From NCBI GenBank assembly GCA_964247055.1, contig OZ176060.1, forward strand, positions 1,798,001-1,862,000: a stretch of DNA of 64,000 nucleotides, written 5' to 3'. The position numbers were made by a program, and so were the translations under genes. Position 1 is the stretch's first letter. The number at the start of each line of letters is the position of its first letter. Positions 21,735-62,859 of the stretch are shown piece after piece. Below the pieces are notes generated by a model. The model saw only the letters and a list, made by a program, of their open reading frames with translations, had not been told where the DNA came from and made no database searches. The stretch is from Paragordius varius (Eukaryota; Animalia; Nematomorpha).

Positions 21735-22900
21735 AGACAATTTGCTGATAGTTTTATGTTTGGATGGTTTGTAAGGTGATATAAATTCATTGGCTGTATT
21801 TTTGCAGATTGTGTATATAGAATTCCATATATTTTCAATGTTTGGACATTTTTTTGGGTGTTCAAGACTATTAAAACGATTATGTAATGTAAGGCTATAA
21901 TTATTATCGATGGTATTATAGTCGAGTTTATTACGAAGTGTTTTAGGTTTTTTCTTGGGTAATTGGAGTTTGATGCAGAGCTTAGCAACTAAAAGGTTAT
22001 GATCAGTGTAGCAATGAACTTTTATATTTATTCATGCCAATTATAAAATCATTTTGATTACGGTATTTTGGACACGGGAACGCCATGTGTAAAGGCGTCT
22101 TTTGGATTGATTAAAGAATATGTTTGCTATAAAAATTAATGACTTGGACAAAATTCGATGAGTCGATCGCCTCTGTCGTTTTTTGTTCCTAGTCTTGCCT
22201 CCTACAGGGTATGTATCCTCACCAATGATACTGTTGAAATTCACCAAGGAGAAATAGAATATCTTTTTTGGTACTCGCTTTATTGCTGTTTTTAGCTCAT
22301 TGTAAAAGGTTTCGCATTTGTCGTCGCTGTATGAACTGGTTGGAGCGTAGACTTGGAGGATTGTTATGGGCTGAGGTCTAGTTTGGATCCGTATTGATAT
22401 CATACGTTCGTTAATAGGATTATAGATGTCGGATAAATTTGCTAATTTCTCCTTCATTATGATACCTGTCCATTGTATTTGAGAGTGTTGTGTCCGGAAT
22501 AAAATAGTACGTGATTTTCGAATTCTAAGATGCCATTAGAAGAGATATGTGTTTCAGATACACCGAGTATGTCGATGTTGTATTTTATCATTTTGTTTAT
22601 AACAACATCGATTTTGTTGTTATAAGCACCTCTAAGATTCCAGGTGGCAACTTTTATATTCAAATTCCTTGATTAAAATGTTTGAACCATTGGAATAAGC
22701 AAAAATATGATAGTTTAGGTTTGATAGATTATTATAACGAGAATTTATGACGGAGAATATATGATGGATATTGTGAAGAGATGATTTTAATAAATGATTT
22801 AAAAATATACGAATGTATGGAGATGAGTTAAAATTACATTATTTATGGTAAAAAAATATATTGAATAGGGTAGGTCTACCATACCTTTCCCTCTCAATTG
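21735..22900 (-). mobile_element. RTE-clade non-LTR retrotransposon 5' fragment (AP endonuclease), 3'-truncated
   Basis: IKVATWNLRG, IDILGVSET, ITILQVYAPTS, TDHNLLVAK and NRFNSL motifs of RTE APE, with frameshifts. No RT domain; stops abruptly at the 3' flank of copy 2. Confidence 0.85.
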
Positions 22901-23962: not shown

Positions 23963-24755
23963 CCATTTACACTTCAAGAGTGTCCTTGAACAATTCAAGT
24001 GGTCCTTGAACAATTCAAGTTGGTCCTTGAACAGTTCAAGTTGGTCCTTGAACAATTCAAGTTGGTCCTTGAACAGTTCAAGTTGGTCCTTGAACAATTC
24101 AAGTTGGTCCTTGAACAATTCAAGTTGGTCCTTTAACTTTTTTGTTTTGTTTTTAACTTTTATCAATCAAATCGAAAATAATTCGTCTATTTTATTGTTT
24201 TTAACCTATTTTCTATTATTTAACATAAATTTTAAATCGATATCAACTTTTAATCTTTGAAAAACCGTATATCTTTATTAATTTCTTAAAATAAATTTAA
24301 ATATTTATAAGATTTTAACACGAAATGAAAAAATATATAAGTTTTCTGGGTTATTAATTAAAATTTTTCATTAAAAACATTTAAAAGTCAATAATTTTGT
24401 TCAATTGAAAAAAAATAGTTTTAAACAAAAAAGTGGTTTTTCAATAAAAAAATTTATTTTTAAATGAATAATTATATAATAAATAAAGAAAATTAGGTTA
24501 ATAAATAATTAAATAAAAAAATAAATGCAAAAATTATGGTTAAATCAAAATTTATAAATTTTAAGGACCAACTTGAACTGTTCAAGGACCAACTTGAACT
24601 GTTCAAGGACTAACTTGAATTGTTCAAGGACCAACTTGAATTGTTCAAGGACCAACTTGAATTGTTCAAGGACCAATTTGAACTGTTCAAGGACCAACTT
24701 GAATTGTTCAAGGACCAACTTGAATTGTTCAAGGACACTCTTGAACTGTAAATGG
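23963..24755. mobile_element. Foldback MITE (793 bp) with tandem 21-bp subterminal repeats
   Basis: Ends CCATTTACA...TGTAAATGG flanked by TATATA; 7 left and 8 right copies of GGTCCTTGAACA(A/G)TTCAAGTT. Absent at the paralogous site upstream of copy 2 (about 19445). Confidence 0.9.
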
Positions 24756-34521: not shown

Positions 34522-35751
34522 TTATCGGTATATTTCTTTTGAGAAACCGGACATTCTTATTTTTTCGTGAACAGATTTAATGTGCGTTGCAAGATAGCTT
34601 TTTCTAGAAAAATCTGTTTTACAAATCGGACATGGATATCTAATTTGTTCTGCGTTGCAAGATAGCTTTTTCTAGAAAAATCTGTTTTACAAATCGGACA
34701 TGGATATCTAATTTGTTCATGAACAGATTTAATGTGCGTTGCAAGATAGATTTTTCTAGAAAAATCTGTTTTACATATCGGACATTGATATCTAATATGT
34801 TCATGAATTGAATTGATGTGCGTTACAAGTGAGCTTTTTCTAGAAAAATCTGTTTTACAAATCGCACATGGATATTTAATTTGTTCATGAACAGATCTAA
34901 TGTGCGTTGCAAGATAGCCTTTTTGAGAAAATTCAGTTTTACATATCGGACATGGATATCTTATTTGTTTATGAACAGATTTGTGTCTTGAAAGTGAGCT
35001 TTTCTGGGAAAATTTGGTTTTACAAATCGGACATGGATGTTTAACTTGTTCATGAACAGATTCAATGTGCAATGCAAGATTGTATTTTAGTGAAAAACCA
35101 GCCTTACATATCGGGCATTCATATTTAATTTTTTTGTGTACAGATTTGATGTGTGTTGCAAGATAGCTTTTATGAGAAAACATTTTTGAACAAATTTCGC
35201 ACGGATATTTAATGTGCTCATGTACCGAACGAATATGCTTGTTCAAGCTTTTAGTCATATAAATCTTATCACATTGAATACATCGATAATTATGATCAAA
35301 TTTTGTAGAGTTTAATGACTTAATAAGCTTTGCATTATTATTAAAAAGCTTGATAATATTACTATTTATTTTAACATTCGCACACATCGGAGTAATTTGC
35401 ATTACGTTTTCCGATGGTTTTTTAGCGAAAGATCTAAAGGCTCAGTCTGCTCTCCTACCAAATCAATTATCAAGTCGTTTTTGTTGATTTTGGGAATGAT
35501 ATGAATTTTATCATCTAAGCTAATATTTTGTTGCGTATTTTCGCTTTTATGTTCCCTTGAATAACAAAGGTTATGGAAAGAAGCGTTCAGAATTCTCCGT
35601 AAGTCATCATTTGTGAAGTCTTCAGTTTCCAACATATTAGTAAAAGATGCCGGTTTACATGGATCAATATACTTTTCTTGTTGATTTTTGAGTTCTACTT
35701 TATAAAGCTTAGTATCGAGATCACACCAAAGTTTGTAAGTTGAGTCGCCGA
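34522..35751 (-). pseudogene. C2H2 zinc-finger array (9 fingers) with PLDLS motif and two frameshifts
   Basis: Acceptor at 35752, then open frame through EQTEPLDLSLK. An A6 run (35418-35423) lacks one base needed to continue into ORF 34557-35402. Fingers are C-X2-C-X12-H-X4-H with EQIRYP-type linkers (87-bp units). A 16-nt deletion at 34650/34651 removes the His pair of finger 8 and shifts finger 9 out of frame. Confidence 0.8.
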
Positions 35752-48538: not shown

Positions 48539-51500
48539 AATTCATCGGTTATGTTTAAACGGGACAGGATGGAAATTGGTACACCTATGTATTATAAATT
48601 GTTATTATGCACTATGTGTGGGAAAAACGCTTTTAAAAGGGTATGGTTGTCTTTTAAAGAAAAACACGTCCCCTTTCAATGAAACCATTTTTCAGGAAAA
48701 CGCCATCTTAATAACAAATATGAAGTAAAATTTGGAAATTCTCTTTTACCATCGCAATTAGTAGTGATAGTACTTGAAATGATAATTTTTAGTAGAATCT
48801 TTCCCACGTGTCATAGTTTGAGACTCGTTTTCACCTTGTTGTACACTCATCAGTCACACATAATGTTCGTCTCATAAAGCCACCAATTGCTTGATAGAAA
48901 GTACAACTACTAATTGCGATCGTAAGCTAAGAAAATAATCTCCAAACTATGTTACATATTTAATAAGGATGGCAACCCCATCGTGGCTAATGGATATAAT
49001 AAAGGAGATATGATAATTTTATCTCAATCGGCGCCTCTTGGATTTGTTCTCTGTTTGCACTTAACCAACTATATTGGGAATTCTTAGTATATTTATACAA
49101 AATTCTAATTGACAATACGCGTGATCATAATGTATGACGGATTTTCCAACAGGAACCGTCTTATACTATCATACATGGTAAATATTGTTTATATTTTTAG
49201 GAAGTACTGCAATTTCTTATTGCGATGCTAGGCTAAGAAATTATTCTCCAAACACTGTATATTTAATTGCTCTTTAAGCTTCTACGTTTTTGTATGATTC
49301 AATTTTTATTGTATAATTGAGTGTGTGACGATTTGCGTCTTATTATTTTAACATCTATAATAATGATATAAAAAAGTAATAAAAGTATGGCTGCCTTTTT
49401 AAAAAAAATCATCAGTTAGTTCTAAATATTGTTCTACAATATTCTCTTCTTAAGAGATTATGTCATTATTTTCTGGCATGTCTGTATTTTTTTGGGTTTT
49501 TCTTTAAAGGAAGGCTCATTTCCAACTTATAAAGCTGGCCCAGTAATTATAGATAAAGTAGACTCTGGGGGGACGGTGAACCAAACAAGGATTTACTAAG
49601 ATAATCTGATAATGTTAAGCCATGTACAGTTAATATTTTTGACATTAAATCGGTAATTTATTATTTAATAATTTTTCTAATAAATTATGTATAATTTGTT
49701 TGCGAACGTTGCGTATGTGTATAAATAGAATTTTTATATGAACTTTGTACTAAGCATCCTATTAATAGAATTATTGAATAACATATAACTACTGCATAAT
49801 TACATAAATTATTTTTTAATCATGTATATGTTATCAAAATTATTATTCATAAATATTCTGTGCCAAATTAATATTGGAGGTTAAAATTGATTTATTCAAC
49901 ATTAAAATTTAGTTATAGGGACAAAATATATATTAAAAACAAATTTTTTTCATTATATTAAAAAGACAATCATAATAACTTAACTATTAAATTTATAATA
50001 TATATTATATTTAAACAACTTTCTGAGTTCATTTCGTAATTAAAAAGAAAATAAAAAAATATTGTGTTAAAAATCATGGTTGTCTATTTTAAAAAATAAT
50101 TATTGTGTTTTATTTATATTACAGTTAAAATTATATGGACAAAGGTAAAAATATAAAAAAATATTTTTTATAAATACAACAAAAAATATAAATTATATGA
50201 TTTTGTATGAATTTTCGATTTCTACAAGTAATCCTAAAATTATTATATAAACTAAAATCTAAATTCTATATTAATAACAATCAATAAATATTTTTTTATG
50301 ATACTATTATAATATTTATAAGCTTCAATAAGTTTTTGGACAATTTATTTTTAAAGAAATGACATCTAAATCTCTAAATGTAGTTCTCAAAAATCATGGA
50401 AATTACTTATGAATTATATTGCTTAATGTTATTTATGCCAACAATGGCGTATGTATACGGAATAGCACTAACTAGGGAATAAAATTGAATAAATAAATTT
50501 ATTTGCAGATAATACACAGAATGAGACATCAGCTTTTAGAACTTGTTGCTTAAAATATGAGAAATAAAGGAATTACCAACAATTACTACATATTATTTTT
50601 AATGAACCTTTAAAAATATTATAAATTGAGAATTGAAAAATTAGTTCATATTTCTCATTTTGATTTGCAAGGTATTCAAAAACGGCTTTAAAACGGCTAT
50701 GTAGCAAAATGTTTTAGTAATTTAAATACATATATTTAACATTCGAAATGTAAATGGACCGATATATAAAACTTTTTTTGTTTGTCATATAAATAATAAC
50801 CGAATGTGGAATATAATCATAATAATAATAAATAAAATAGAAAACTTGCAAAAAAATACAATCGATTGCAATAATAATATTTTACAAATATTGATAACTT
50901 CTACTAAACGTAATAACTAGCCATGTTTATTTTACCTTATATTTAAGAACTTTAATTACAAAATATTATATAGGCCTATCAATTACACAAGAAGAAAAAC
51001 AGACACAAGGTTCACAAAATAACGATATATTTCAATTTAGTTATTTGGAATGTTCTTTCCAAAAGATTTAATTTATTGGAAACGCCCGATGATTACCATG
51101 TCCTAATAGGTAAACATTAATTTTTAATTTCGTGAAAATTTTAATTCTACGGATAAAATAAAAAATATAAAATTAAAGACAACCATATCTTAAAAATCTT
51201 TTTATTACAATAGTATAATAATTGATTGTAGTACCAATATCTATCTTTATTTTATAATTTTAATGAGTTATATTCGAAAAAATCAAGATTTACAAAGTAT
51301 GGTTGTCTTTTATAAATATTTCATTTTTTTTCTGTTTTGACCGTATAACTTCATTTTTACTGTAATTAAGGAAAATATAATATATCATATTTTATGAAAA
51401 CAAACAGAAAATCCGGTATGTGTTTTTGACTTATGTTAACTATTTACCATATATTTTAAAAGTATTTAAGTAAAATGTAAAATTTAGCCCCATCCATGCA

Positions 51501-52399: not shown

Positions 52400-53820
52400 A
52401 TCCTTATTTCACAACAGGCAACGATATGTATTTGAGAAACGATAAATTAAGATTTGTTAAACAATAGGCATGTTTGCAAGGAACAGCGATCCAGAAAGTG
52501 TTTGATCTCAGACTAAAACAATTAGGAAGCGGTATTTAAGGTGTCTGGAATGAAAGGTGCTAAAAATTAGGTGTATAGAGAAGCATAGCTGAAAGACGCA
52601 ATTATTTTGAAGCGAGGAGTAAAGCTTTAAAAATGTGGAGGTATACCCACCATGCAAAAAAGGACAAATATAAAAGAATTATTAAGAAACTTAGAGAGCG
52701 AGAATAGTCAAAAAAAACTGTATGACATATAAACAGTAGGGATTGTCTAAAAAAAACTATTGCTCGATACCACAGAAAGACCTGGACTTGTCTTCTTTTG
52801 TGACCGTTGTTAAAGAAACGTTAAATTTTTTGTTAAGGAAGTGATTTTGAAGAGATGAAATGTTTCCAGAACCTAGAATTGGTTGTCAAAGAAAATTTAC
52901 GCTAGACTCTTAATCTGCGCATATTGAAAGAACTACCGAGGAGGTCAATGCCGTTTGAAAGAGATGTATAAAGCTGCTGGTTTGAATGATATTAAACTGT
53001 TAGAAATAGAGAAAGGTATTGAATTTTTAACGAATATTTTAATATAGTAGTTACTACAAGTATACCAAACTTATGGAAGGAGAGTTTCACTGTTTCCAAT
53101 TCAAGGTTAAGCACATATAAATGATTATAACCACTACAAAGAAATAAGATTGATGTCGCATACAATGAAGTTATTTGAGAAAATATTTGCGAAGGAATAA
53201 GAAAAATGGTTATTATAGAGGGTAATCAAATTGGTTTTAGGTTCATCATCAATCCGATTTACGCATTAAGTGGGCTAATAAAAAAACAATTGAAAAAGAT
53301 GCATGTTTTTTAATCGACATTAAAAAGGCGTTTGACAGAAAACCACGGAATAATATGGTGAAGTTTAAGACGAAAAAACGTTCCTGAAAGTTACATGAAA
53401 ATACTTAAAAGTATGTACTACTCTCACCACACCAAAGTTAACATAAAAAAGTGTCAGATCTTATCGAAATAAATTGAGGCATCGATCAGGATCAGATATC
53501 ACGTTGCGATTTATAATACCAATGAAAACTTAAAAGAAGAGGCAAATTGCGGCTTGTATTTTCTTTATGACGACCTTATAGAGCTGTCAGACGAGTTGCA
53601 TGAATTGAATGAATTGGTGTAATGAATTGATGTGTTACGATTGTGCTGTCTCAAAATTAATAAAAAGCGGAATTATTGGGAGAAAACGAGAAATGGAATT
53701 AAAAAAAGGTTGGGTATTAATAGATCAGGTAGGAATGCAAATATTTAGGAGCGATATTAGCCGCAGATAATAATTTAACGCATATTATAAATTTAAGAAA
53801 TCGAAATAATTGGGCAATTA
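52400..53820 (+). mobile_element. RTE LINE reverse transcriptase pseudogene
   Basis: Frameshifted motifs WKESFTV, RLMSHTMKLFEKI, NQIGFR, IDIKKAFD and a YDD-like catalytic segment. Confidence 0.75.
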
Positions 53821-54078
53821 TATGCATATCTTAAATTTTCTGTACGATAAAAATATTGTTCTAAAAGTCATGGAATATTATTCATTGATTTAAAAAATTC
53901 ATAATTTACACATTTTATACAATCAACAATGCCCTCAAAAGGGATGTTCTAAGCACCGCCATTTTTTAAGTATAAATTACATTTCGATTGTGAACATTTA
54001 TTATTATTTTTTTTATTATTTATATACTAAAAATAGCATTACAAAGCATCGCAGGGTAATTCAGTAGTCGTATATATA

Positions 54079-54366
54079 CCATTTAAAGTTTAAATTCATC
54101 CTTACCTTCAATAAAAAATTAAATTAGAGACTCTAAACTGTATTTTATTAACAATTCCTATTTCACCTTAAAATAAATTAAATGATCTTAGATTTAAAAT
54201 ACCTGTGTTTTTTTATTTTTTTTTAAAAAAATTTCTATGTAAAATAATACTCAAAAAATAATACTTTCTCATATAAATATATTAATTTCATTAAGAAATT
54301 ATATTAGACTGAAATTTTTTTTAGAGTGAACTTGAATTGTTTAGGATGAATTTGAATCGTAAATGG
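54079..54366. mobile_element. Short foldback MITE of the 21-bp-repeat family
   Basis: TATA|CCATTTAAAG start; GAACTTGAATTGTTTAGGATGAATTTGAATCGTAAATGG|TATA end. Confidence 0.6.
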
Positions 54367-54842
54367 TATATTTAATCTATAAAGCGCAGTTAATGTTTTT
54401 TATTCACAATCAAATACATTCATTCAAAGACAAGAAAAAATAAAAATATTGGATTTTTTTCTTTTAAGATTTAAAAAAATGTAAAAATTTTAAATGCAAA
54501 TGGAGTGTAAATTTAGCTTGCTTAAAAAATATTGGCAATAATTGTTTAAATTAATCGAAAAATATTTGGGTAAAAATGTTATGTTAAATATAATATTTTT
54601 AAAATACCAATTATAAAGAATGTAACTACAAATTAATTTTAATAATAAATTACGATTTCCTGTTTTAGCAGTGGTTTCCATGAAATACTTTCTCTCAGAA
54701 ATATCGAAAAACTCATTTTTCTTCCGAACTTTTGTTGATATAAATAAAAATGTTTCAATACCGGAACAACATGCCTTTTCCTCACAACTCAAAAAACAAA
54801 AAAATAAACTAAAGTTTGATCATCGCAAAGTTTATATTCCAG

Positions 54843-57554
54843 AACAACGAAATAGCCCAAGAAAGAGTGGTAGCTCTATTGTTGGAACCGCATTAATTGG
54901 GGGTAAAAAATTAATTATTAGGCAATATAATGGGATTAATTGAAATTATATATATAATGTAGGAGCGGCGACAGGTGAATTTTTTTCTATTTTATATTTT
55001 TATAATATTTTATTGATAAAATTATTTACAACAGGTGTGATTGGCGGTATGATATATTTTTATATATATTAGTTTTTTTTAGATGTTTTGTTATGTATCT
55101 AGATTTATATTTTTGTCAATGTCTTTTTGTAAGAAAAAAGAGGATGTCAGCGCAACGCATAAAATATTTTTGAAGTTTATAAAATTTTGCTTATGTTTCA
55201 CTACATTATAAGTCCTAATACTATATTTTGAATAATACAATAACTAAAATAGTTTATAATATATAAGACGTTCAAGGATATTAAACTTTAATCCTCTAAA
55301 ATATTAAAAACCCAATAAAAATTTATGAACTGACCTCATAGTTTCTCTATTAAAGTAACCCTTTTGTCTCTCATTAAAATAAATAGCACCAAATCAAATA
55401 ACATTTCCAAGTTTGATAAAGAGTTAATCCGTCCCACACCTTTAGTTTTAATTTAAGTTCAATAATTCCTATGAAATCATACACGCAAATACAAATATTT
55501 TTTTAAAAGACAACCATATTTTAAATAGAACCTATCATTTTGGACTAAAAAATATGTAAAAAGGTATACCATTTGCACTTTAAGATCCCTAAACACTTTA
55601 AGTTGGGACTTTTTGTTTTGTTTTTTAATTTATATCAAAACGTGTTTTCATTTATTTTATTATTTTGATCCCATTCTCTGATTTATCAACATTTTTAAAT
55701 CACTATTGATCATTAAAAAACTGTATATCACATTAAATATATATTAATGAGATTTCAACATAATTGATACAAGGTTATTATTTATAATTTTTTTTGAAAA
55801 TTTATACTTGAATAATATTATAGAAATGAAATAAAATGGATAGAAACAAAAATTGTTTTTTAATTAAAAAATTAATTTTAAATTAATAAATATAATATGA
55901 TAATTAAAGAAAATTAGGTTAAAAAATAATAAAATAAAAAATACTTTTAAAATTATGGTTAAATCTTAATTAAAAATTTAAGGACATGTTCATGGACCAA
56001 CTTGAAGTGTTACAGATCCAACTTGAAGTGTATGGTATATACTTAAGAGTTTTAAACCAGGTATGAAAAGTGTGGGTATCCTTTAGAAAAAACTATTCGT
56101 TTCAAATTCATTTATTTTTACTGTAAATATTTTGCCAAAATAATTTAGCTGTTGTTGGGGGTGGAGCCTCGGAAACACCCGAAGTGGCAGCTGTCGTACA
56201 AGGAGTCAATGATATGGAGTTGGGTGAAAATGTAGCACAAAATCTCGCAAACAACGAAAACCCAACTGATGAAGAAAACAACATTGAAGAACGACAAGAA
56301 AATCCAGAAAGAAACTCAAGATCATCTGAACATCAAACTAATCAACCTTCTCAGTCGACTTCAAATTCCAGTAGTTACATATTAAACTTAAATAAAATTG
56401 AAATATACGGACATACCGTAAAAAGGCAATTATTTTTTTTCAAAAATATATATAATTGATTGTAAAAACGCTATATTTAAATTTTAAGCAAGATAAGTAT
56501 TTTGAATTTTTTTTAAAAGAAAAGAGTTATCTTTTGAAAAAAATAGTTGTCTTTTTTATCTGCGTTTTGTCCGTAAAATTTCATTTACTGTATATTTAGT
56601 TTATATTTTCTTTCCAGATTATGAGATTTTATTATTGGTTGCATATCTATCAATAATATTGTTATTTAATTAAGGAAATTCACCAGAGGAGAATGCTAGA
56701 TTAGACACAGAAGATATCGGTAATTTTAAAAAAAATGCTATACGAATGAAAATACTGTAAAACATAAAATTATAATGACAAAATGTAAAAATAAAAAAAA
56801 TATTTTTGTCGTAAAGACACCCATATTTTTTTAACCTTAACTTTTCTCATATAAACTTTAGTTTTATATGTAAAATATAGAATTGATTAGTCTTCTCACT
56901 TTGTCATTTAATAAATGAGTTTTATTGAATAAATCATGTGAAAAAAGTATGGTTGTCTTTTAAAACATATTTGTCTTTATACGTTTTGTCCGTATAATAT
57001 AATTATTACTATAAAAAAAATAATAACCTTGCATTATATAGCTGATAGACCTGAACACACATCAGAAGAAATCGAAAATGGTAAAAATATAAATCGAAAT
57101 TAATATAATTCTCAATTAAATTTTAGTTATACAATTTTTATAACAAAATAGCCCGAGAAATCGTGGATCGATACGGTAGAACAAAACAAATTAAATTAAA
57201 GTTTATCATTTGAATTAATATATTTTTATATCAATTTGTATAATGATAGGAATGTATCATTTAAAAGCAGGTTGTAATTTTTATAAATAATATTCAAATA
57301 CTATAAGATACTATGATAATTTCTTATATGTTTAGCTCTGTACAATATAGAAACTGGTAAATCAACTGAATACACAATTCAATTCATTTATTCTAAACTT
57401 CATATACACTTAGGGGCAGAGAATGTGATGTATGAAGCCGAAAATATAGTTACAAGTTAATTTTTATAAATTACTAATAATTTATCTTGAAATCAAAATT
57501 ATACAGGCTAATCGCCTAAAACAAATAATTGGGCTCGCAAAATATGGAATATAG
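54843..57554 (+). CDS. Micro-exon gene A: Gly-zipper hydrophobic segment, acidic linker, amphipathic C-terminal helix
   Basis: Exons 54843-54902 (60), 54963-54974 (12), 55035-55046 (12), 56149-56370 (222), 56675-56719 (45), 57042-57080 (39), 57152-57175 (24), 57250-57270 (21), 57336-57356 (21), 57414-57448 (35), 57507-57554 (48). All GT-AG; the first nine are symmetric phase 1. Reads QRNSPRKSGSSIVGTALIGGAATGVIGAVVGGGASETPEV...EEIENAREIVDRYGMYHLKAALYNIETGAENVMYEAENIANRLKQIIGLAKYGI*. Start exon not identified; some donors are weak. Confidence 0.75.
55569..56035. mobile_element. Shorter relative of the 23963 foldback MITE, inside an intron of micro-exon gene A
   Basis: TA|CCATTTGCACTT...AAGTGTATGG|TA ends; GGACCAACTTGAAGTGTT units; interior matches 24470-24560 (AAAGAAAATTAGGTTAA...AAATTATGGTTAAATC). 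Confidence 0.75.
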
Positions 57555-58271
57555 ATGTATATTGGTGAAAGATAACTATCATCGTTTAAAAAAATACCAT
57601 ATTTTTAAAATTCTTTTAATTTTACGTTTGATATGTTTATTCTAATGTATAATTGAAGACACCAGGTTTCTTGGAAGAGGTATGGAAAATATTTATACAT
57701 AAATAAGGTATAATATTTGCGGAAATATTTAACAGATTTAATTTTATTAAATATTTTCATAACATAATTATTTTTTAAAGCACAAATCTAATCGCTAAGC
57801 CATGTAAAACTCATATTATTTAAAAGACATATATCTGACCAATTTTTAGAGTGTGTTTTCTGCTAAAATTTATTTGATAACAATAATGAAAAAAAGAGTT
57901 TATTATATTTTATAGTAAAATTATGAAAATTGCACAGATATATTATTCATATGTTAAAAGTCAATGAAGGATAAAAATACATTTTAAAGTAACATTTTTT
58001 TAAATAATAGGCGCTTTCGGCTAAAACCTATAATTAACATTATATGTAAATTGGTAGTGATCATTATAAAATCAAAAAAGGCTATTTTTCGAAATGGCAA
58101 CATACATCAATATTTAGAGAAATTATAGGTTTACTAGAAAAACAATAATGATTCAAATCACGGTGTCCACACAATTCTCGAGCCGCATACTAAACTAAAT
58201 TAATTTTGAGAATACATATACAACAGATGTATCTCTCTTTGATTTATAAGTACATAGGGGTCTCTTATTAA

Positions 58272-58836
58272 CACTTGGATACAACAGACTCATTTTAGTC
58301 CTTCGATTCAAATTGGGGTAGTTGAATACCCCAGGCCTGTGTTAAATTAAATACTTTAAAAAATATGGAAATCGAAACCATGGCAAAATTTTGCACTTAT
58401 ATAACATTAATAAACCGAAATATATAAAAAATTTTATTCATAAATACTTGATATTATTCATTTTGAGCTAAAACTGAAAGGTAAAAATTTAGTCAACGTG
58501 ACATGTGTGCGAAGGTAAAATTAAAAAATAATACAAAATAAATTCCATTTTTATCAATGTTAGATGTAATTTATATAAAAAATAAGCTTTAGTTTTACCT
58601 TTAAATTTAAATAAGGACGATTTTTGCAAAATTTTTGTAAAAAAATGGCGTCGAAGTAGTTTGAGGTGGAACTTTTTTTCAAAACAAAATTTTATCACGA
58701 TATTTTGGCATATTTTTAATATTTATCAGGATAGAAGCATAAATTTAAATTGGGACCGATTCCTTTAGTAGTTTTTTAAAAAATTTAATTTAAATTTAGT
58801 CTGGGGTATTTAGATACCCCAATTTAAAACATAGTG
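58272..58836. mobile_element. TTAA-flanked (piggyBac-like) MITE, 565 bp
   Basis: TTAA|CACT...AGTG|TTAA with subterminal inverted GGGGTA..TACCCCAG motifs; partial copies at 36254 and 28060. Confidence 0.75.
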
Positions 58837-59000
58837 TTAATGCCACTCGTGCTCTAAGTGGCGAAAATGGCGTTCGGTATCTTATCATATATGTTTTTGA
58901 AATTACGAACTGATTAATTATAGAATTTTCTCATATATCTCTTGTGTTAAATCAATATTTTAATTTTAAATTTGCTAATTGTTTAAATTATATTTTTTAG

Positions 59001-62000
59001 TTTTACGCATGTCTGGGCTTAGACTTGAAACCCATTTGCATGGTAAGGAATAAAGTTTAAATTTATACAGCTTTAAGTGAATCAAGTATGCATGTATTGA
59101 TAATCAATATAATTAGATTTCATACAAAGTAAATATATTTATGAATACAAATATTATAAAGGGGCGTAACAAGAAGAAGTTTTTTAAATCACCCATATTT
59201 TTTACCTGATTTTTTAAATATATTTACAATTCAAATTCCCCCTTAAACAATTCAAATTACCCCTTAAACAATTCAAATTCACCCTCAAATAAATATATGT
59301 TTTTAGATAAAAAAATACCGAATATTTTTATATATTTTTAAAAAATAAAAATTTTGTTTTTAATTTAAATAATACTGAAAAATAATAAAACATGCCATAA
59401 AAATATATTTCTCATTAATATTAGTTCAAAAACTCATAATATATTTTTAGGGTGAATTTGGTAGTTCCATCATCACCCCAAATATTTTTGAGATTGGACT
59501 ATAAATGTAATTTTTAAGAATTTTTTAAATATTTAAAAATTTTATTTTATACGTTTTAAAAATAAAAATGGCTACCTAAAATCCAAATTAGGGTGAATTT
59601 GAATTTTCGAGAGGGATTTTAAATTGTTCAGGGGTAAATTTGAATTGTTTAAGGCAAATAAATGCAATTGAGTTTGTTACCATTTAATACTTTGTTTTTT
59701 TTGGATTCAAAAACGAGTTATATAAAATAAGGTATATAATATGGTTGTCTTAAAAATATTTCCCATATTTATGTTTTGTCTATTATATTTATTTTTACCT
59801 TTTTTATTAAAAATATTTGCATGGCAGTTTTAAGGGACCAAATAACAAGTAGAATTTATAATAAATTAAAAAATTCGGATAATATCTTGAAAATCATTTT
59901 TGCATACTTTATATTATAAAATTATTGATAGAAATTATATCAGAGAATGTTTATCTACTTATATTAAAATTATCCAATTTTTGGCGGAAACATAGGAAAT
60001 TTTTACCAGTCTGAAATTGCTGATTTCAAAAATTATGGAAATAGTGATGTAAACAAGTTTTGTGGTATAAAAAGCGGAAAATTATAATATTGCCATGGGA
60101 AAATGAAGTACAATATAATGCGTTTTAAAGAGGAGATCAGTAATTATAGGGAGACTTATAAAGAAAATAAGTACGCTAGGGCGTCTTAAACTAGTTAATT
60201 TAATAAGACTGAAAATGCTACAAATAATGACGGGATATAGTGATTGAAATTATCCAGAAAAAAGCTAGTTTAAGCATAATTATAAAACATTGATATTCAT
60301 TATAAAACCCCTTTGGCTAGAAAATGAAAAGAGATATAATTATAAAAGTTAATAATATATTTGTGTTATTATATAGTTTTCTTAAAAAAAAGGGTTTTCC
60401 AAAGCATCTACAAATCTTTAATTTAAATATTACGAAATCTGGAAAAGAAAAGTAGTTAGATAACTAAAGTTGATAGATCTTCTACAAAGTTTATTCGTTG
60501 TTTTGTAAAAAAAATGAGATTATAGGAAGATTTTCTATAGTAATCATTGTATAACAGGCATTCACCAAAGTAAAATAGAGATTTTATAATCTTTATTGTT
60601 TTATATTAAATGTATGATATTTTTAGGTAGATATATGAAGTTAAATACCTATAATGCTGAACTTATTCTTTTATATTTTTTATTTAAACGAAAAACATCT
60701 GGCTTAAAATGTTGCCTAATATGTTATTTATCATTAGGGTAATTGCTTTTCGGTATAGAAGACAGAATTGTAAAATGATTTTTAATTAATTGGAATCCCC
60801 GATGGTATATTAATAAACGATAAATCATAAAATAAAGTGTGTTGGTAAAACACATAACCAAAACTATATTTCATGTTAACGTTCAGCGTGTGTTAATCAT
60901 AAACCTGATCGATTACAAACAAGACATTAACTTTCAAGGGACGAGAAAGGCTGTTGAATACCGAGGGATTAACTCGGAAAATATTAGAGAAGATAAAACC
61001 ATAATATAGTAATATCAAATGTTTAAAAAGGAAGAGGAGTTAATTTAATTTAAAAAAAAATTTTTGTTATGCCGAGCGCTGAATTTTGGGACCTTGATTT
61101 ACACATCGATATTTTTAATAATTATTTTTTTAATTAGATTTACGTCAACTTCTGGAAGGTAATTAATATGTAGTTTAATATAAAATATTACAACAGGCGT
61201 TGAAGACGGTTTTCAAGGTATTTTCGCAATATAGTTAAATTAATTAAAATAAAATAAAACACATTTGCAATAACGTTTAATTTATCATAATTTGAGTTTT
61301 TTATATTAGCTCTTGAACAACGATTTACTGGTATGTTTTTTTGGACAAAGCGAAATGGAAAAAACTGAATTTTTAAGCTTTATTATATATATTATTCTAG
61401 AGAGTACATCCGCCACACTAGGTTAAAATTAATTTTTATATTTTAGCTAACGATCTAAATATAGTGGGTAAGATATATAATTGTATTTTCACATGGCAGA
61501 AATATCTGAAGACATTAATGGTATAATTTAAATTCTTTCCACATAATTAATATTTATATTGATGTTATTTTTTATAATAGACGCAATAAACGCTGAAGAA
61601 TGTAAGGAAATTATTGAAATTTATTTTATACTAATTTTTTAAACACTTTCATTACATTAATGTCCATATTCGGCTAAACAACTCTGCTGGGTGTGCTCCT
61701 TTTTGAGTCATATTTTCGTTTTGATAAAAGAGTGCGAATCTCTTTTTACGACAAAACTAACAATCTATCTCTATTGTATCGATTTAACATCCGTTTTATA
61801 ACTATCCTTTACTTTCTTTTTCGTATAACCTTTTTTTGTAAAAATGACACCGATTAAATGCTTATGTCCATGAATTATTTTATGTCTCATTAAATATAAA
61901 TAATTTTATTGCATTGTTAAATTCAACCAAATATATTTAATATCTCTATTTACATCGGTTTGATGATTGCAGATTTTTACTTTAAAAAATCTTCTGACTT

Positions 62001-62366: not shown

Positions 62367-62859
62367 GTAATTTTAAATCAACATAATGACATCTTTCGCA
62401 ACGATTTTAAATTAAGAATATAAGTTTTTGCTTTTCAATCGGTTTATTTCGAATATACCATCATATTTTATTTTTTTCGAAAATGATTTTGTATACACGT
62501 TTTTAACTGAAATTTTTTTTGTTAACTAATTAAAAATAGAATTTAATTTTGCTTTCTAAATTCTTCCAAATTAAGGTATTTCATTGAATTTTCATATTAG
62601 ATGAAGACAATAAAGAAGTATGACCTGGTAAAGACGATGAAGAAAACAACATTAAATTTTTACATTTATAGATATATGGTGTATATAGATTATATAAAAT
62701 GGTGTCAATAAATAAATAAAAATATTCCTTACTAGTGCCTTAAAAAATTGATACAAAAAAAATCGTTTATAGTCCATTATTTTGGTACGACTTGAGTTGT
62801 ATTGGAAAGCTCTATCTACATTATAAATTTGGGTTTGAACTCGAATACACTAAATATGT

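Follow-up and report, generated by a model that had tools for sequence, protein, structure and literature searches.

The 64,000 nucleotides (nt) of Paragordius varius (Eukaryota; Animalia; Nematomorpha) DNA analyzed here, positions 1,798,001 to 1,862,000 on the forward strand of contig OZ176060.1 (assembly GCA_964247055.1), hereafter the window, carry on the + strand a chain of candidate small exons that we call gene A. With modest confidence, gene A is read as an orphan, lineage-restricted protein-coding gene extending from about 54680 to 57460 (or 57554) in 9 or 10 exons, and the locus is quite probably a real spliced gene. The exon borders, the reading frame, the base composition, the features of the encoded protein and the absence of relatives were observed directly, and together they suggest that the exons would be spliced in the chain drawn below. 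An initial annotation had described the locus, between 54843 and 57554, as a cassette of nine symmetric exons resembling the micro-exon genes (MEGs) of Schistosoma and encoding membrane-active-looking helices. The features of the gene model, in coordinates of the window, are as follows.

54655..54668, + strand: pyrimidine-rich acceptor-like site (..tttcctgttttag/), read from the sequence; also the acceptor for a phase-1-open segment
54680..54902, + strand: first coding exon (exon 1), 223 nt, with the ATG, the basic N-terminal region and the start of the predicted membrane helix; donor G/gtaaaa
54963..54974, + strand: 12-nt micro-exon, phase 1, (G)AAT, one four-residue zipper period; tag/GAGCGGCGACAG/gtgaat; fraction of G plus C (GC) 0.75
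55035..55046, + strand: 12-nt micro-exon, phase 1, (G)VIG, second four-residue zipper period; cag/GTGTGATTGGCG/gtatga; GC 0.58
55047..56148, + strand: intron 3, 1102 nt, apparently enlarged by an insertion resembling a miniature inverted-repeat transposable element (MITE); inverted arms 55565-55606 / 55997-56039
56149..56370, + strand: exon 4, 222 nt, phase 1, completing the membrane helix (AVVGGGA) and adding a helix beside the membrane and an acidic stretch rich in Asn, Glu and Ser; GC 0.42; GC at codon positions 1/2/3 (GC1/2/3) 0.61/0.41/0.27
56675..56719, + strand: 45-nt exon, phase 1 (RNSPEENARLDTEDI); aag/.../gtaatt; GC 0.40
57042..57080, + strand: 39-nt exon, phase 1 (ADRPEHTSEEIEN); tag/.../gtaaaa; GC 0.38
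57152..57175, + strand: 24-nt exon, phase 1 (AREIVDRY); tag/.../gtagaa; GC 0.54
57336..57356, + strand: 21-nt exon, phase 1 (ALYNIET), one heptad; tag/.../gtaaat; GC 0.33
57414..57460, + strand: last coding exon in model 1 (exon 9), 42 nt, two heptad-like units (GAENVMY and EAENIVT), then AGT TAA on read-through; no GT after the first 21 nt; stop at 57458-57460
57507..57554, + strand: possible last exon; phase 1 adds Ser and a stop, phase 0 gives a basic, partly hydrophobic end of 15 amino acids (aa) with stop TAG at 57552-57554
57659..57679, + strand: candidate further 21-nt phase-1 exon (xTRFLGR); GC island 57652-57687; aag/.../gtatgg

Seven internal exons, of 12, 12, 222, 45, 39, 24 and 21 nt, were re-derived from the sequence. 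Each is bounded by AG and GT, has a length divisible by 3 and is open in phase 1, and the confirmed exons, once joined, give a continuous frame without a stop. All seven had already been listed in the initial annotation, whose statement that the exons can be skipped in frame holds for these seven, symmetric as they are in phase 1. Eight of its nine exons lie at the places given; the pair of 21-nt exons placed at its end is a single 42-nt exon (57414-57455), the first 21 nt of which are not followed by GT. A G precedes the donor in 7 of 8 cases and all exons after the first begin with G or C, so that the split codon specifies Gly or Ala and in one case Arg; at 7 of the 8 junctions it begins in G (Gly or Ala). 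Introns free of repeats are 51-71 nt long, and the 12-nt exon 54963..54974 is flanked by two 60-nt introns with GC of only 0.17 and 0.12. Introns 3, 4 and 5 are longer (300-1100 nt) because of MITE-like insertions: each of the 1102-, 304- and 322-nt introns contains a MITE-like inverted repeat, the element in intron 4 (304 nt) being palindromic and that in intron 5 (322 nt) related to it.

Composition and codon structure were then compared between the parts of the model. The exons have a GC of 0.33-0.75 and the introns one of 0.12-0.25. GC islands at a fine scale coincide with the exons. Over the whole spliced coding sequence (CDS), GC1/2/3 is 0.52/0.38/0.28 (chi-square p=1.2e-6), and the small exons alone show a gradient in the same direction (0.58/0.41/0.32, p=0.01), which supports the frame imposed by the splicing model. 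Among the AG/12 nt/GT segments outside the locus, 4 of 242 were both GC-rich and membrane-compatible in their residues, and the probability of two such segments falling in the 1246-nt gap between exon 1 and exon 4 is about 8e-4 in a post hoc test. Counting symmetric AG...GT segments crudely, by strand and by phase, did not discriminate because short candidates are too common. Positions 55846-55882, inside intron 3, were masked or excluded in the repeat, tblastn and codon-position or open-frame analyses.

Searches for relatives of the product were conducted at several levels. With E values up to 10 allowed, neither the 32-aa helix region nor any exon piece matched a Pfam family, glycine-zipper profiles included. 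A word-indexed protein search with the exon-4 frame, which took in proteins of 56-178 aa, gave no match, and the ESM Atlas gave none for either large exon. When 1.84 billion representatives were searched exhaustively with phmmer, over all lengths, the single marginal match was to a bacterial repeat protein (P0001), which was matched through low-complexity residues and was rejected as a relative. Comparison of the product with the window by tblastn returned only the gene itself and thus no paralogue, and searches with the exon-4 and exon-1 pieces revealed no sequence relation to a MEG family.

It may be asked whether the locus is a working gene at all; GC-richer segments and open frames could have come together by chance, or the locus could be a pseudogene in decay. 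The lack of a homologue, of a paralogue in the window and of an RNA run holding the locus would fit such an origin, as would the low-complexity sequence, the weak 5' coding signal and the abundance of short AG...GT segments, of which those of 12 nt occur about twice per kb on each strand. Against it stand the codon-position gradient (p=1e-6 over the whole CDS; p=0.01 when only the small exons are counted), GC islands that match the exon borders exactly, a continuous hydrophobic helix built across three introns, and two open frames of 74-77 codons, each with a chance of about 1e-3. We regard a non-working locus as rather improbable. The reading of gene A as an orphan coding gene is nevertheless weakened by several further points. 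Three 3' ends are in question (57460, 57554 and a continuation through 57659), and the final donor, GTTAAT or GTTACA, is weak; over its first 163 nt (54680-54842) the CDS is weakly coding compared with the rest (GC1/2/3 only 0.37/0.22/0.24), and the real 5' end may differ; none of the listed sequencing runs recorded as RNA contains the locus; the evidence for the frame comes from a single genome; and a chance or decaying chain of open reading frames (ORFs) would likewise be expected to look like an orphan of low sequence complexity.

At the 5' end, the initial annotation had begun the gene with a 60-nt exon (54843-54902). A good acceptor is indeed present at 54842, but the segment appears more likely to be the tail of a 223-nt first coding exon that starts at ATG 54680. 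The frame upstream of 54843 is open for 54 extra codons to this ATG (chance 0.007), and no ATG-initiated exon with a phase-1 donor was found in 53700-54842 (1.1 kb upstream); the longer first exon is therefore preferred. Its frame opens at 54671, with ATG 54680 as the fourth codon, three codons past the preceding stop. The acceptor-like site tttcctgttttag, called strong (region 54655-54679), lies 11 nt upstream of the proposed ATG and is possibly the end of an intron in the 5' untranslated region or a trans-splice acceptor. Two other arrangements were considered and rejected: an upstream signal-peptide exon, of which none was found in 53700-54842, and a 29-nt intron (54814-54842) feeding the acceptor at 54842, as the frame upstream of it ends in TAA at 54810-54812. 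Within the 1.1 kb searched, repeat-like DNA resembling a decayed retroelement begins upstream of the gene.

At the 3' end, read-through to the stop at 57458-57460 and splicing to 57507 both give a protein end ...IVTS, and the exon 9 donor A/gttaat at 57456, which is weak, may be used in place of read-through. A phase-0 reading of 57507..57554 needs a 35-nt exon 9 with the donor ATA/gttaca at 57449; in this phase the segment has a coding-like gradient (GC1/2/3 0.53/0.33/0.20) over 15 codons only. The gene end at 57554 given in the initial annotation is reached by way of this 35-nt exon 9 and the phase-0 last exon, but not in phase 1, which stops at once.

Gene A could also represent the 5' part of a longer gene of 8 kb, running via 57659-57679 to the 21-nt exons at 61138-61601 and beyond. 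Such a continuation would agree with exon 9 closing in phase 1 with a possible donor, with the GC island, AG/GT borders and open phase 1 of 57659-57679, with the phase-1, heptad-per-exon style that the downstream exons share, and with an exact 18-nt match (GATGAAGAAAACAACATT) between 56268-56285 in exon 4 and 62636-62653, 3' of the downstream micro-exon series, where 0 were expected in 100 shuffles. However, the flanks of the 18-mer are unrelated, a stop follows directly after exon 9 by read-through and by the nearest acceptor alike, and no convincing exon chain was found after 57659-57679, MITE-like repeats taking up space in 57680-61137. On balance the longer gene is unlikely; the segment 57659-57679 itself may belong to gene A, as an additional exon, or to another transcript. 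The series at 61138-61601, downstream of gene A, comprises seven 21-nt phase-1 exons.

The product predicted for gene A has 214 aa in model 1 (end ...IVTS) and 226 aa in model 2, which carries the basic, partly hydrophobic 15-aa end; the 214-aa form includes no cysteine. Its residues 1-66 are basic (net +9). The C-terminal 125 residues carry a net charge of -22, with Glu, Asn and Ser abundant, and this acidic part is probably disordered. Between the two, residues 67-89 (IVGTALIGGAATGVIGAVVGGGA) form the sole hydrophobic segment, a stretch of 23 in which Gly, Ala and Val abound; its Kyte-Doolittle 19-residue mean is 1.99 at residues 67-85, and the protein has no second such segment. Within residues 67-89 the glycine-zipper pattern (G/A/S)xxxGxxxG is present, with stripes A71-G75-G79-A83-G87 and G74-T78-G82-G86. 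The zipper string quoted in the initial annotation is exactly the product of exon 1, the two 12-nt exons and exon 4. The membrane helix is encoded across these four exons, two of them of 12 nt, and when exon 1 is joined straight to exon 4 in the model only 15 hydrophobic residues remain, so that the 12-nt exons are needed for a full membrane span.

The tail exons AREIVDRY, ALYNIET, GAENVMY and EAENIVT make up a loose heptad repeat, Asn being followed by Ile or Val, and the tail ends in three or four heptad-like units. The amphipathic helix that the initial annotation had attributed to four short exons was not recovered, the hydrophobic moment being not above that of shuffles (P=0.2, both 3' models), and of its membrane-active helices only one ordinary membrane-spanning segment finds support. 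AlphaFold2 prediction of the exon-4 piece alone gave a membrane-adjacent helix at piece residues 10-34 (25 residues) and low-confidence coil elsewhere, with a mean predicted local distance difference test score of 63, which is weak as a single-sequence result. No signal peptide was found: the N-terminus, whose 5' end is a sequence model, has no hydrophobic core, and the best 19-residue window outside the membrane helix reaches 0.41.

By the positive-inside rule, the N-terminus would lie in the cytoplasm and the acidic tail would face outward. Motifs of the GxxxG type, with small residues at every fourth position, pack membrane helices into dimers or oligomers (PMC12470825, PMC7749410), and the glycine zipper of gene A would be expected to drive self-association of its helix in the membrane in the same manner. 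From this orientation and the zipper together, we infer from the sequence that the product is likely an oligomeric, membrane-anchored acidic surface or lumenal protein, and its topology, oligomerisation and function are to be taken as predictions. Single-pass proteins with GxxxG or glycine-zipper motifs, such as APP C99, share with gene A the small residues every fourth position on one helix face; they constitute a motif class rather than a family and have no sequence relation to gene A, and the use of one 12-nt exon per zipper period sets gene A apart from them. The tiny exons track the periods of the predicted protein, 12 nt corresponding to one four-residue zipper period and 21 nt to one heptad.

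The resemblance to MEGs was examined against their definition, under which the coding region falls mostly within very small symmetric exons and a signal peptide is present (PMC4350168). MEG exons of S. mansoni are 6-81 bp and mostly 15 bp, and their introns are long (10.1101/2023.06.21.545858). Exons of up to 36 nt account for 69 of the 642 nt of the gene A CDS (11%) and exons of up to 45 nt for about 30%, and the two ordinary exons (223 and 222 nt) make up 69%. Gene A therefore does not fall within the Schistosoma definition; the MEG-like label of the initial annotation stands for exon symmetry only, with so small a share of the CDS in exons of up to 36 nt and no signal peptide found, and frame-neutral exon design alone is insufficient ground for the label. 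In common with Schistosoma MEGs, gene A has internal exons divisible by 3, in one phase and droppable in frame, some of them very small (12-24 nt here), no relatives outside the lineage, and a host organism that is possibly a parasite. Unlike Schistosoma MEGs, which have long introns and a signal peptide in all products, gene A has repeat-free introns of 51-71 nt, no signal peptide was seen and no variant transcripts are known.

An independent system of the MEG type, in which symmetric phase-1 exons would be skipped combinatorially to yield variant host-interface proteins as in Schistosoma, was weighed on the same features. Symmetry and a common phase in all seven internal exons would keep each skip in frame, omission of the 12-nt exons would leave the zipper in its four-residue register, and the genome may belong to a parasite; its GC of about 26% throughout the window may be set beside the 26.93% of the published horsehair-worm genome of Gordionus montsenyensis. 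Against this, the small share of the CDS in exons of up to 36 nt, the two dominant ordinary exons and the missing signal peptide have been noted above, and frame-neutral exons alone do not demonstrate alternative splicing. Moreover, symmetric phase-1 exons are common in disordered or extracellular regions of animal proteins, and exon-phase symmetry is linked with intrinsic disorder in human proteins (PMC3632108). The symmetric exons of gene A likewise coincide with the probably disordered acidic region, but they are far smaller than the phase 1-1 exons of such regions and are matched to 4- and 7-residue periods. A combinatorial system of this kind is accordingly given little credence.

Gene A was also compared with the bicycle genes of aphids, whose proteins are secreted and carry a signal peptide and paired Cys-Tyr-Cys motifs. 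Bicycle genes are described as having numerous small internal exons, of which almost all begin at codon position 2 (that is, intron phase 1), about 17 exons on average and a minimum of 5, in an AT-rich genome and with homology undetectable by sequence, and CYC motifs are mentioned (PMC9168663). Internal exons in intron phase 1, an AT-rich genome and the absence of detectable homology are shared with gene A, whereas gene A differs in its 9-10 exons, two of them long, in having no cysteine and no signal peptide, and in the possession of a membrane helix.

As to the surroundings, no transfer RNA or Rfam matches were found in the window, which also lacks a housekeeping gene and carries numerous MITE-like inverted repeats. 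The MITE-like inverted repeats within the introns of gene A are located as follows.

55565-55606 / 55997-56039: MITE-like inverted repeat in intron 3
56396-56445 / 56532-56585: MITE-like inverted repeat in intron 4
56781-56845 and 56962-57004: MITE-like inverted repeat in intron 5

A motif common to these intron repeats (..tatggttgtctttt..gttttgtccgta..) can be seen by eye again near 50077, 51300 and 59740. A tandem duplication of 'intron 4 + exon 5' and 'intron 5 + exon 6' was considered and rejected, because the alignment shares only the dispersed MITE-like repeat and not the exons. The interval from gene A to the next micro-exon series contains two further inverted-repeat elements, 58307-58363 / 58772-58828 and 59226-59289 / 59606-59654; the latter element includes three direct repeats of 21 nt. 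A 21-nt tandem repeat forms arrays at 23982-24137 and 24563-24736 (7.5 and 8.3 copies, 95% matches, opposite orientation), and the core AACTTGAA of these arrays is also present at 54329, 55999 and 56020, beside or within gene A. Elsewhere in the window, 34557-35402 on the - strand holds an intact 281-aa ORF with at least 6 C2H2 zinc fingers (Pfam E=2e-39), at the start of which ends a 77-aa ORF (35402-35635) with no Pfam match. Stretches at 52400-53800 (+ strand) and 22041-22457 (- strand) resemble, by eye, the coding sequence of a decayed retroelement, and Pfam gave nothing in the two pieces tried.

By itself, gene A is no evidence for a variant-generating system and is a modest case, and its style of tiny phase-1 exons more probably reflects the genome in general than a cassette dedicated to generating variants. 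A more far-reaching view, which we hold to be very unlikely, takes the micro-exons as register-preserving length modules whose regulated inclusion would tune helix length, within an independently evolved, genome-wide micro-exon system of horsehair worms. Each 12-nt exon would then supply one GxxxG period, inclusion of none, one or both giving 15, 19 or 23 hydrophobic residues, and each 21-nt exon would add one heptad to the tail; if this were true, helix length would set membrane sorting or oligomer state with the packing face undisturbed. No published account of micro-exon genes in nematomorphs was found. Part of the value of the case lies in the corrected label on its likeness to MEGs, and standard gene finders would miss or truncate a gene of this kind. 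If gene A is spliced as drawn, exons down to 12 nt would each carry one turn-period of a membrane helix, and the gene would provide a membrane-anchored example of a micro-exon gene in an AT-rich genome.

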